NCBI GenBank assembly: GCA_038496445.1
Contig: JALMLS010000075.1
Coordinates: forward strand, 62,001-126,000
Length of the DNA stretch: 64,000 bases
Origin: Trichosphaerium sp. ATCC 40318
Lineage: Eukaryota; Protista; Tubulinea
Direction of reading: 5' to 3'
Shown here: piece by piece, positions 1 to 50,100 of the stretch
Position numbering within the stretch: position 1 is the stretch's first letter
Layout: every line of letters begins with the position of its first letter
The notes under the pieces: model-generated
Told to the model about the DNA's origin: nothing
The model's input: the letters and a program-made list of their open reading frames with translations, nothing else
The model's database searches: none
Made by a program: the position numbers and the translations under genes

Positions 1-1617
1 CAGCTTTCCAAATATCACGTGTTCCTTACAAGAATATCAGCTCTTATTTCTGTAAATAATAGGCATATGGCGGAGGAGGGAGACAATTCAAGCGTTAGAA
101 AAGCGCAATTAAAGCCATTGACAGTATTCAAAGGAACAGACAGCGCCATTGATAAAATAAACAACGCAGGAAACTTTATATTTGATCCGAATGGAAAGAA
201 CAACGATAATTACGTAGACAGGTAATTCGTTAGTGCCACGGCACTGTACATAGGTTAATACGCTTAGACTAATACGCACGCATCGCGCGAAAACGCCTGT
301 GGATGGTTTGGGTCAAGGTTTGCTTGGGCTCGGTAATAACTTGTACAAGGGTGTAACCGGCGTTGTAGTACGTTGGAAATGCGATAGCACTCTTGTGTTG
401 TGAAATTCAAATGTTACATAGACTGAACCTGTTCGTGGAGCATCAAAACAAGGCACTATGGGATTTATGAAAGGTCTAGGAAAAGGCCTAACAGGGTAGA
501 AAATTAAACAGAAATTACAAAAAAATAAGAAATTTAATTGTGTTATTTAGATTAGTGACGAAACCTGTTGCTGGTGTTGTTACATTGACTTGTCAAACAG
601 CTGAAGGTATTGTAAATACACCAAGGACAATTGCAAGGGCAACAGGGAGAAGAAGGAAGAGTAAGTTAAGGAATAGCACTAATTCAAGCAGAAAATCTGA
701 TTCAGTGTAGAGGATAAAAAAGGTGCTATTGATACGGACAAGGACGTATCAGATTCAAGCAGTGAATCGACTCTTCAAAACACTGATGTTCACTTTATAC
801 AACCGCTTATTTCAACCATAATTGCTAAAGGTAAGAAGAAGTTTATTTTTCTTAACTTTTTTCATTTTGTGCTAACAACAAAAAAGGCTTGGCCGTTCCT
901 AGTTTATTCTCAAAAAACGGAGACTATGCCAAGGTTACTGCTGTGAAAAATAAAATAACCAATGGAACACGTATAGACTTTAGAGCATATGATGTACATG
1001 TGTTGGGAAGCGTTCTCTTAGTATGATGAGCCTTTTAAATAGTCTTCTTTAACTTCTCATACGATTATAGATGTATTGTAGTGATTTGCCTGATTCTCTC
1101 ATTCCATCAAGGCTCTACCAAGATTGCATAGAAGTTGGCAAACAACTTAAAGATGCAAAGCAGGCAAACCAAGACAACGAAAAACTAATATCTAGCGTCA
1201 AGAAAATCCTTTCGCAAGTGCCATCTAAAAACGAAGTACGTCTGTCTTGTTTTGGTTTTACGTACTAACTATTACATAGACAGTATTCGCTTTGGTTATT
1301 TTAATGTTATACGAACTATCACAGGGGCTTAGCGACTCTAAAAAGAGACTAATGCAGCTATCAAAAGTTTGGGTAAAAAATAACCGGTTTTTACCTCTTG
1401 AACACGTGTTAACCGCGTGTAATGTTCTGCTGTGCTTACTTGGAACTAGGTTAATGTTCTTACATACAAGCTAGATGGAGACGAGAACGCAGCAAGCATG
1501 GCAACCTTGGACTATAACGAGAAAAGTGCTTGCCGTTTTTTGGCCTTTATTGTATCTAACTGTGATATTTTCTTCCCTGCTGAGGATATATCAACTACTA
1601 GTAGCGTGTCAATGTAG
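1..1617 (+). CDS. 3' part of a VPS13/ATG2-type C-terminal (ATG_C) domain protein followed by a RhoGAP-like domain (spliced, 5'-truncated)
   Basis: Spliced translation gives TPVDGLGQGLLGLGNNLYKGVTGVV-TEPVRGASKQGTMGFMKGLGKGLTG-LVTKPVAGVV (VPS13/ATG2 C-terminal helices), then YDVHVLGSVLLMYCSDLPDSLIP...ILSQVP (RhoGAP-like). Stop TAG at 1615-1617. Confidence 0.7.
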
Positions 1618-24235: not shown

Positions 24236-25993
<1,758 letters not shown>

Positions 25994-48169: not shown

Positions 48170-48379
48170 TTGACGGCGAAAAGTGATTACGACACGCCTT
48201 AATCCAGCAACCTTACATTGTGTTCAGTACGAAAACGAAATAATAGAGTGGTAAACGGGTGATCAATAATCGTTTTATTGTATTTCAAGTGCTTTTGCTC
48301 ACATAACCTCTTAACCGATTCTTATACGCGTCAATAGCGGGTAGCGAACGAATTCTCGCCAGCAAAGCAGTTTTCGCCC

Positions 48380-48450
48380 ACGTTTCCGCCCTTTCAGCAG
48401 TTTGTCACTCGCTAGAGTTTTGACAAATCGCGTCACTTGCATGACGACGT
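48380..48450 (-). promoter_or_regulatory. SECIS element (form II, GUGA core)
   Basis: Minus strand reads ACGUCGUC..AA GUGAC GCGAUUUGUC AAA ACUC UAGC GAGU GACAAACUGC UGAA..GGCG..ACGU: quartet core, 10-bp helix II with one A-C mismatch, apical AAA, mini-helix. Confidence 0.85.
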
Positions 48451-48498
48451 ACAGGTAGTTAATTAGAGGTCGTGGCAATCACAGCGCGAATGTCACGC

Positions 48499-48958
48499 TT
48501 ATTTCTGTTTAATCTCTACTGAGTGGGAATAGAATCCGAACCTATGGTACATTAAACAAGGCTTGAGGGTAAGAACTTGCCATCCTTTGATTTTCTTAGA
48601 GGATCCAGAAGCGTTTGGGTAACACCAAACGTGGTTTGGGAGTTCCTTCCCATCAACAACGATGTTGTAGTAGCTGGCCGTGCCCTAAACGTTCAATGAC
48701 GAATCGATCTGAGGAAAACTCCGCACAAGCGCTGGTTGCATTAAAAACGTACCTTGGAGCCTCAAGAGCTGGTATTAGGCGACTTGACGAAATACTCCAT
48801 GTTAACAGATTGTGGAGGGATGTAGGTGTATCCTAAAGCGCATAAGCATTGTTTTACGTTACATACAGACCAAAAGAACAAAACAGTTGCCTACCTGAGA
48901 GCGACTCAGTTTTTTTACTGTCAGCGATAACTTTGCCGTTGAAGGTAATTGTTGCCAT
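48499..48958 (-). CDS. DUF427 (NTP_transf_9)-family selenoprotein candidate, 96 aa, Sec45
   Basis: Exons 48958-48895, 48832-48753, 48684-48581, 48541-48499 give MATITFNGKVIADSKKTESLSGYTYIPPQSVNMEYFVKSPNTSSUGSKGTASYYNIVVDGKELPNHVWCYPNASGSSKKIKGWFGFYSHSVEIKQK*. TGA at 48764-48762. Confidence 0.85.
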
Positions 48959-49044
48959 GATTGTCAATTTAAATTACTAAAACACAAAGTATTGCTTAAC
49001 GCTATTTTTTATTTAAGCTAGTAATATTGGGCTATGTACAAAAC

Positions 49045-50100
49045 TCATTGTTTCCAACTGTAGATTTGCATACGAATCTAGAAAAAAAGTGTCAAGATTT
49101 CTCATGGACACAAAAAAAGAAAAAAAAAACCTCACCTCTTTTGCTTCGTCTACGTGGTCTTCGCGGATTCTCCTTTCTCTTTCTTCCTCCTCTGCTTTTT
49201 TAACTTGTTCAAGTGTTGCTTTACGGGCTTCTTCCGCTTTTCCTTCTTCCTCCTTTTCTTCCACAATCTTAAACAACCCACGTGTTAGTATAAAATAAAA
49301 AAAGAACAAGTTGGGAAAATGTACTTACCCTACGTGCACGCTCCTTCTCTTCCAAGGTCTTAGCTCTGCTCAATGAAGTGTGTTCTTCAATTGGACCAAA
49401 TGCCTTCTTTGCGATCAAAACGTTACAGTCAGCGTTCTCGAGGCAATACTTTGTTGTAGAACCAACGAAAATTCTTGCAAAATGTCAGAAAATGTAGCAT
49501 AATAACAATAAACCACACCTTTTAACTGAGTTCATATCGCGTCTGCCAATCACCAAGTGGTGAATATTCTTTTCTTTGACAGCCTAGGCTAGTTTAAGCT
49601 TCTTTGTGACAAAACCCAGACTCACCTGACAAATGCCATCCCCAATATGCGTCGACCAACCCATTACTAGCTTAGGCGTCACAAGTACTTCCTTTGCTCG
49701 TTTATGGAAGAATCTCAACGTCTTTTTACACAGTGCTTCCTATTTATCGTTGTCAAAATACAAAACCGCAAAAACACTTTAAAACGTACCTGTTGCGCCT
49801 GGTATTCTTTGATATACTCACCAGACTCTAAAGGAAACAAGTGAAGGTCCTTTAGGTCTTCAGCTGCTCTGTAAATGTACAGAGTGTCGTCTTTGACGTT
49901 CATTAGCGAGAGAGCCTACAAACAAGCAGTCAGTAAATCGGTACGGAACGTTAACTGCCGTACAATATTAAAAGCCCACTGGGCGTACCTACGCGGTAAG
50001 TGTCAGTACAGCAGTACAACGGTTGTACAAGTAAGCGACTTGTATTTAAAAAAAAAACGTACTCGCTCTCATCTACTGCTACCATCCAATTTGTTGCCAT
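49045..50100 (-). CDS. Universal stress protein (UspA domain) with charged coiled-coil tail
   Basis: WMVAVDESEYAQWAF...ICQAVKEKNIHHLVIGRRDMNSVKRIFVGSTTKYCLENADCNVLIAK. Confidence 0.88.

Follow-up and report, generated by a model that had tools for sequence, protein, structure and literature searches.

A short, four-exon gene on the minus strand of the window (the whole 64-kb stretch of DNA that was analysed) very probably encodes a selenocysteine-containing member of the DUF427 family (Pfam NTP_transf_9, PF04248; COG2343), a family so far unlisted among selenoproteins. Its reading frame continues through a TGA at codon 45, at the position of the family's conserved Cys, and a hairpin with the features of a form 2 SECIS lies in its 3' UTR. 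We consider it highly likely that UGA codon 45 is decoded as selenocysteine (Sec), as directed by this SECIS, in place of the Cys. That reading rests on the retention of the TGA in four independent spliced contigs, on homology to DUF427 on both sides of it, and on the SECIS.

Gene structure and transcripts

The gene model, which specifies 96 codons (288 coding nt) in four exons, is taken from the window sequence together with spliced transcript contigs (Table 1). The transcript evidence consists of contigs from four public runs, belonging to four studies and carrying four organism labels, that map to 48200-49100. Each run yields a spliced contig, and what is absent from these contigs is precisely the introns of 62, 68 and 39 nt. 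No variant letter is found at the TGA in any of the four runs. (Under two of the labels, B and C, the sole departures from the window are at 48380, 48471 and 48487, all of which are in the 3' UTR and outside the SECIS.) The four-exon gene of the original prediction, with its frame open through the TGA, is accordingly found with all its elements at the predicted minus-strand coordinates; transcripts from four runs bear out the predicted splicing, with the three introns removed exactly, and the codon in question is neither TGC nor TGT in the contigs nor spliced out, being present as TGA in all four spliced contigs.

The ATG at 48958 is preceded, 18 nt 5' to it, by an in-frame TAA. Contig X9 ends at 48978, where it adjoins a loose end resembling a template-switch oligo, and this position is suggested to be the 5' end of the transcript. 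At the other extremity, contig X1 stops at 48260 and contig X9 at 48264, just past an AATAAA. These contig ends imply an mRNA of ~550 nt with a 3' UTR of ~239 nt.

The third intron is very short, its 39 nt are a multiple of three, and it contains no in-frame stop, so that its retention would add 13 residues and leave the frame unbroken. (The position of its joint has 2 nt of slack, and GC-AG is the sole canonical placement.) It is nevertheless removed in transcripts, and its excision restores the C-terminal pattern of DUF427 that is seen on alignment with bacterial homologues.

Table 1. Coordinates of the protist gene (window numbering) and of the bacterial loci discussed in the text (numbering of each locus)
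Feature	Position	Strand	Remarks
Transcription unit	48260..48978	-	~550 nt once spliced; from contig pieces
Exon 1	48895..48978	-	20-nt 5' UTR; ATG 48958-48956; 21 codons + 1 nt
Intron 1	48833..48894	-	62 nt, GT-AG; joint seen in 3 runs
Exon 2	48753..48832	-	bears the proposed Sec codon; contigs, Pfam match
In-frame TGA, codon 45, proposed selenocysteine	48762..48764	-	retained in 4/4 spliced contigs; Cys in 55/56 homologues
Intron 2	48685..48752	-	68 nt, GT-AG; joint seen in 4 runs
Exon 3	48581..48684	-	G-T-A-S-Y-Y-N-I core of the domain; Pfam match
Intron 3	48542..48580	-	39 nt, GC-AG; joint seen in 3 runs
Exon 4	48260..48541	-	last 13 codons; TAA 48501-48499; 3' UTR ~239 nt
SECIS, form 2 (candidate)	48385..48447	-	Rfam SECIS_1 full-length alignment; own descriptor; constrained fold
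AATAAA polyadenylation signal	48274..48279	-	contigs end 10-15 nt downstream
L060, TGA at Cys codon	1633-1635		NCBI MAG
L061; L062; L063, TGA at Cys codon	1633-1635; 347-349; 395-397		JGI and ENA; one of six distinct sequences
L064, TGA at Cys codon	300-302		distinct sequence
L065, TGA at Cys codon	1633-1635		contig ends ~9 codons past TGA
L066, TGA at Cys codon	836-838		Logan
L069, TGA at Cys codon	401-403		distinct sequence
L070; L071; L072, fragmented DUF427 genes	1201-1481; 92-229; 1201-1520		1-nt deletions in T or C homopolymers
L011, L015, L018, L022, L030, L031, L046, L053, egtD-linked	DUF427 start ~1360		egtD = Methyltransf_33

Homology to DUF427 and the TGA at the conserved cysteine

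DUF427-like sequence had been claimed on both sides of the TGA, and Pfam matches both pieces. (The scan was run on the exon pieces separately and not on the joined read-through protein.) The exon 2 piece, which precedes the TGA, matches NTP_transf_9 over profile positions 28-47 (E 0.021, 15.1 bits). Positions 53-87 are matched by the exon 3 piece (E 1.5e-7), whose 31.5 bits exceed the cut-off of 22.1. Since the two matches are colinear and free of indels, the TGA corresponds to profile position 49.

Homologues were collected by scanning one genome per bacterial or archaeal species with the exon 3 piece. The resulting 56 loci were picked partly by way of the word G-T-A-S-Y-Y-N-I, and so represent one subfamily. 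When the spliced protist protein, with X at the TGA, is aligned (MAFFT) with the ORFs of these bacterial loci, the alignment runs from end to end at 35-46% identity. In tblastn against the same small set of 56 loci, to which the E values of 1e-13 to 5e-21 refer, the aligned part of the query ranges from residues 1-87 to residues 1-95, and its counterparts are bacterial ORFs of 92-105 residues (most of them 92-96), which in turn score 115-118 bits against PF04248. On this comparison, in which the Pfam threshold is passed and the full-length alignment is colinear, the protist protein is classed as a member of PF04248. Its N-terminus aligns with the bacterial N-termini, and there is therefore no obvious targeting extension.

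The alignment column that contains the TGA is occupied by Cys in 55 of the 56 bacterial sequences and by Tyr in the other one (L015). PDB 3DJM, a more distant DUF427 member that has been crystallised, carries the same Cys. The placement of the TGA exactly on the conserved Cys thus stands both by profile position and by alignment column. The sequence that follows is x-W-K-G-T-A-S-Y-Y-N-I in the bacteria and G-S-K-G-T-A-S-Y-Y-N-I in the protist protein, which has both the invariant K-G-T-A-S-Y-Y-N-I segment and a W-C-Y-P motif. Three residues that are invariant in the bacterial proteins are changed in the protist (W47 to S, N23 to Y and F26 to I), and constraint on the protist protein may, in view of these changes, be relaxed. 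The change of C-P-W-K to U-G-S-K, taken in the original prediction as suggesting an adapted active site, may be of that kind.

The SECIS element

A form-II SECIS had been predicted about 50 nt after the stop codon, and a hairpin is present there, its base beginning 51 nt past the stop. Its core consists of GUGA at 48436-48433 (62 nt after the TAA and, in the mRNA, 218 nt beyond the UGA), followed after 11 nt by AAAA at 48421-48418; the 3' core strand is UGAA at 48396-48393, making a UGAC/UGAA core in agreement with the consensus UGAN/KGAW published with SECISearch3 (PMC3753652). Helix 2 comprises 10 positions of which 9 are paired (there is one A.C mismatch and one G.U pair), helix 1 is as aligned by Rfam, and the apex is made up of a 3-bp mini-stem (CUC/GAG), a UAGC loop and one unpaired U.

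On a 141-nt segment (48340-48480), SECIS_1 is the sole family that Rfam reports out of 4227, and the alignment extends over the full model (positions 1-64) and reproduces the layout just described. The score of 13.4 bits is far below the curated threshold (a gathering score of 35); the E value of 5.6 over 4227 families is equivalent to ~1e-3 for a single family. Rfam scans of 1.2 kb and of the whole window do not report the SECIS. Our own descriptor looks for RUGA separated by 10-12 nt from AA, then an apical part 9-29 nt long, the complement of helix 2 (no more than one mismatch tolerated) and N-G-A; helix 1 must comprise 4 bp or more. With these parameters, which were chosen with the candidate already in view, it has a single match on the two strands of the 64-kb window (128 kb), and this match is the SECIS site; 100 second-order Markov randomisations yield an expected 0.16 sites per window, or 0.09 if helix 1 is required. 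From this background rate, the chance of finding such a site in this 240-nt UTR is ~3e-4.

With the core and AAAA held unpaired, the element folds at -14.1 kcal/mol, and its upper stem-loop at -10.5 kcal/mol. The unconstrained optimum (-21.8 kcal/mol; z-score -1.1) is not SECIS-shaped: it breaks up into three small hairpins, and in one of them the GUGA is paired. This competing fold counts against the SECIS. Nearest-neighbour folding models give no score to kink-turns.

Bacterial DUF427 genes with TGA at the same codon

If codon 45 is a true Sec/Cys position, bacterial genes with TGA at the identical codon are to be expected. A profile of N-terminal halves, searched against a large protein collection for proteins of 24-77 residues, retrieves 1268 short DUF427 calls, and of the 120 top-ranking ones ~11 end exactly before the Cys. 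Contigs were retrieved for seven of the latter. In at least six distinct bacterial sequences the Cys codon is replaced by an in-frame TGA, beyond which the frame goes on to encode x-W/Y-K-G-x-A-x-Y-Y (Table 1). Five of the six TGA sequences reach a normal C-terminus, the exception being L065, whose contig ends. In the informative pairs (L061 and L063 against L064), dN/dS is 0.15-0.17 over the 44 codons that follow the TGA, values implying that these codons are translated and subject to purifying selection.

For Sec decoding in bacteria, the hairpin would have to follow the UGA directly and not lie in the 3' UTR. When G+C content is taken into account, hairpins following the bacterial TGA have no clear advantage in stability over those of the Cys forms. 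The bacterial TGA forms are regarded as candidate Sec forms. The protist protein is no closer to them than to the Cys forms, and comparison of the sequences suggests that the change from Cys to Sec occurred independently in the protist and in bacteria.

Recoding at a Trp codon, entertained for short DUF427 calls that end in C-P, was rejected: these genes are fragmented by 1-nt homopolymer deletions in long-read assemblies.

Proposed decoding of the in-frame UGA

We propose that the nuclear gene is functional and encodes a DUF427 protein of 96 residues, a single domain of the beta-tent fold, and that UGA codon 45 of its mRNA is recoded to Sec by SBP2 and eEFSec under the direction of the form 2 SECIS in the 3' UTR. 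Sec would then substitute for a Cys that is near-invariant in the sampled homologues. The Cys column, the TGA in the mRNA, the SECIS and the bacterial TGA forms all support the original identification of the UGA as a selenocysteine codon, and we hold it with considerable confidence.

The principal alternative is that the TGA is a true stop in a recently disabled DUF427 gene, which would leave a 44-residue fragment and make the SECIS-like hairpin coincidental. A single base change suffices to convert TGC or TGT to TGA; on the other hand, the 51 codons beyond the TGA, which are interrupted by two introns (GC-AG in one case), contain no frameshift or stop, and the TGA form is common to several strains or labels. 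Several family-conserved residues are altered, as might be expected of decay, yet the codons that follow the TGA retain 31.5 bits against Pfam. The SECIS falls below the Rfam threshold and must compete with other folds, but a hairpin of SECIS shape is present in the right UTR, where its occurrence by chance has been put at ~3e-4. Conservation of the downstream frame is not documented by any eukaryotic orthologue found, but bacterial homologues with the same TGA have their downstream frame under selection. Moreover, a stop lying 113 nt 5' to the last exon junction would be expected to trigger nonsense-mediated decay, and yet the mRNA has been assembled in four studies. A disabled gene is, on balance, an improbable explanation.

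Read-through of the UGA without selenocysteine, whether by a near-cognate tRNA (Trp, Cys or Arg) or through a second, standard meaning of TGA, is less probable still, to the point of being barely credible. UGA at a Cys position is also typical of systems in which UGA encodes Cys, and the ends of all eight long ORFs checked in the window (including those at 24236, 23054 and 7010) are TAA or TAG and never TGA, a sample too small for avoidance of TGA to be inferred. Against such read-through stand the presence of the SECIS and the behaviour of the Pfam-supported ORFs of the window: when only TAA and TAG are counted as stops, the actin, DOPA dioxygenase, GST and CLU ORFs do not lengthen and contain no in-frame TGA. 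TGA is not in general sense use here, and general reassignment is rejected.

An actin gene in the region 24431-24650 (minus strand) contains a gene within a gene: tRNA-Met (CAT), at 24481-24553, lies inside an intron and on the same strand as its host. This intron stays open in frame, and the ORF list consequently shows one ORF of 313 residues.

Search for eukaryotic relatives and for precedents

A eukaryotic orthologue, with Sec or with Cys, has not been found with the tools used, which are weak for short spliced genes. A phmmer search of 1.8 billion representatives with the 61-residue exon 3 piece gives only two repeat-driven false matches, and word-indexed protein searches with the exon 3 piece and the 44-residue N-terminal fragment give no candidates. 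Single pieces compared with PDB and the ESM Atlas likewise yield nothing informative. The DNA pattern for TGA-x-x-K-G-T-A-S-Y-Y-N has three chance matches in metagenomes; this pattern, which demands N after Y-Y, is over-strict, D or T being present there in the bacterial TGA forms.

The original prediction also held that DUF427 is new among eukaryotic selenoproteins, and the literature agrees with it as far as it was covered. Nowhere in the full-text literature searched, supplementary tables and subscription papers aside, is DUF427, PF04248, COG2343 or NTP_transf_9 described as a selenoprotein, and PF04248 is absent from the table of known and predicted prokaryotic selenoprotein families, with Pfam identifiers, in a review of May 2026.

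Fold and comparison with known systems

Structural comparison was made with an AlphaFold model of the best bacterial homologue (L006) and not of the protist protein. The model has a pLDDT of 97.5 and a TM score of 0.91 to 3DJM. The Foldseek matches that come after 3DJM are Mis18/Yippee, RIG-I C-terminal domains and MSS4, neighbours that place this homologue in the beta-tent class of folds, the class given for DUF427 in PMC4287342. In the model, the key Cys is predicted to lie at the end of the strand formed by residues 36-45, just before the P-W-K / x-W-K-G turn.

The protist protein resembles the bacterial DUF427 proteins (3DJM and the ~93-residue cyanobacterial, acidobacterial and Bacteroidota proteins L002-L056) in length, in colinearity, in its K-G-T-A-S-Y-Y-N-I core and W-x-Y-P motif, and in the position of the key Cys/Sec. 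It differs from them in being the product of a eukaryotic gene with three introns, in having a proposed Sec with a 3' UTR SECIS instead of Cys, and in having Ser for the invariant Trp two residues past the Cys, along with changes at other invariant positions. With the bacterial TGA genes (L060-L066 and L069) it shares both the family and TGA at the identical codon.

MsrB, the methionine-R-sulfoxide reductase, is a selenoprotein in animals and is of the same beta-tent class. MsrB1 (SelR) is likewise a small single-domain protein, its single catalytic Cys is exchangeable with Sec, and its sulfoxide reduction chemistry is of a kind that would suit an ergothioneine-linked role. There is, in contrast, no detectable sequence similarity between the two and no Pfam MsrB (SelR) match for DUF427 proteins; DUF427 lacks the zinc site, and the protist protein has no CxxC. 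The catalytic residue is in a different motif, and MsrB is not among the 50 Foldseek matches listed for L006. A further parallel is provided by lineage-specific selenoproteins from protists whose selenoproteomes are large; these are also small and uncharacterised, with an in-frame UGA where bacterial relatives have Cys and a SECIS in the 3' UTR; they belong to different protein families, and the SECIS described here differs in having G, not A, before the UGA of its core.

Linkage to egtD and a possible function

Common among bacteria and fungi, and with a crystal structure available since 2008, DUF427/COG2343 has to our knowledge no assigned function. The family most commonly encoded beside the 56 bacterial DUF427 genes is EgtD, the histidine methyltransferase, whose gene is directly upstream in 8 of 52 loci. 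In these eight loci, which are from Bacteroidota and Marinimicrobia, egtD shares its strand with DUF427, and 7-60 nt separate its end from the DUF427 start. (One of the eight, L015, is the locus with Tyr at the Cys site, which implies that not every member depends strictly on the Cys.) Of the sulfoxide/selenoxide synthases responsible for ergothioneine-type compounds, 5.7% are listed in a 2026 survey (PMC13674229) as co-encoded with DUF427/COG2343.

Residue 45 would, on the proposed scheme, be the catalytic nucleophile or redox centre of DUF427, and DUF427 would probably take part in sulfur or selenium chemistry tied to the metabolism of thiohistidines of the ergothioneine type, a role suggested because bacterial members are co-transcribed with egtD. 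We would guess at a redox or nucleophilic step, based on Cys/Sec and linked to ergothioneine-type metabolites. A more specific version, which is doubtful but deserves statement, is that DUF427 might be a Cys/Sec-dependent thio- or seleno-histidine enzyme, for example one acting on intermediates of ergothioneine-type compounds (sulfoxide, sulfenic or selenenyl) by reducing or resolving them. If this were so, the independent Cys-to-Sec changes in the protist and in several bacterial lineages would mark the catalytic residue, and a function would be provided for a widespread family that has a solved structure and no known activity.

The gene would add a family to the catalogue of eukaryotic selenoproteins, and apparently to the bacterial one as well, and it exemplifies a gene that standard callers would cut at codon 45. 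It directs attention to a single residue as the working centre of DUF427/COG2343 and, taken together with the linkage to egtD, offers a testable hypothesis: that the family carries out sulfur/selenium redox chemistry around ergothioneine-type metabolites.
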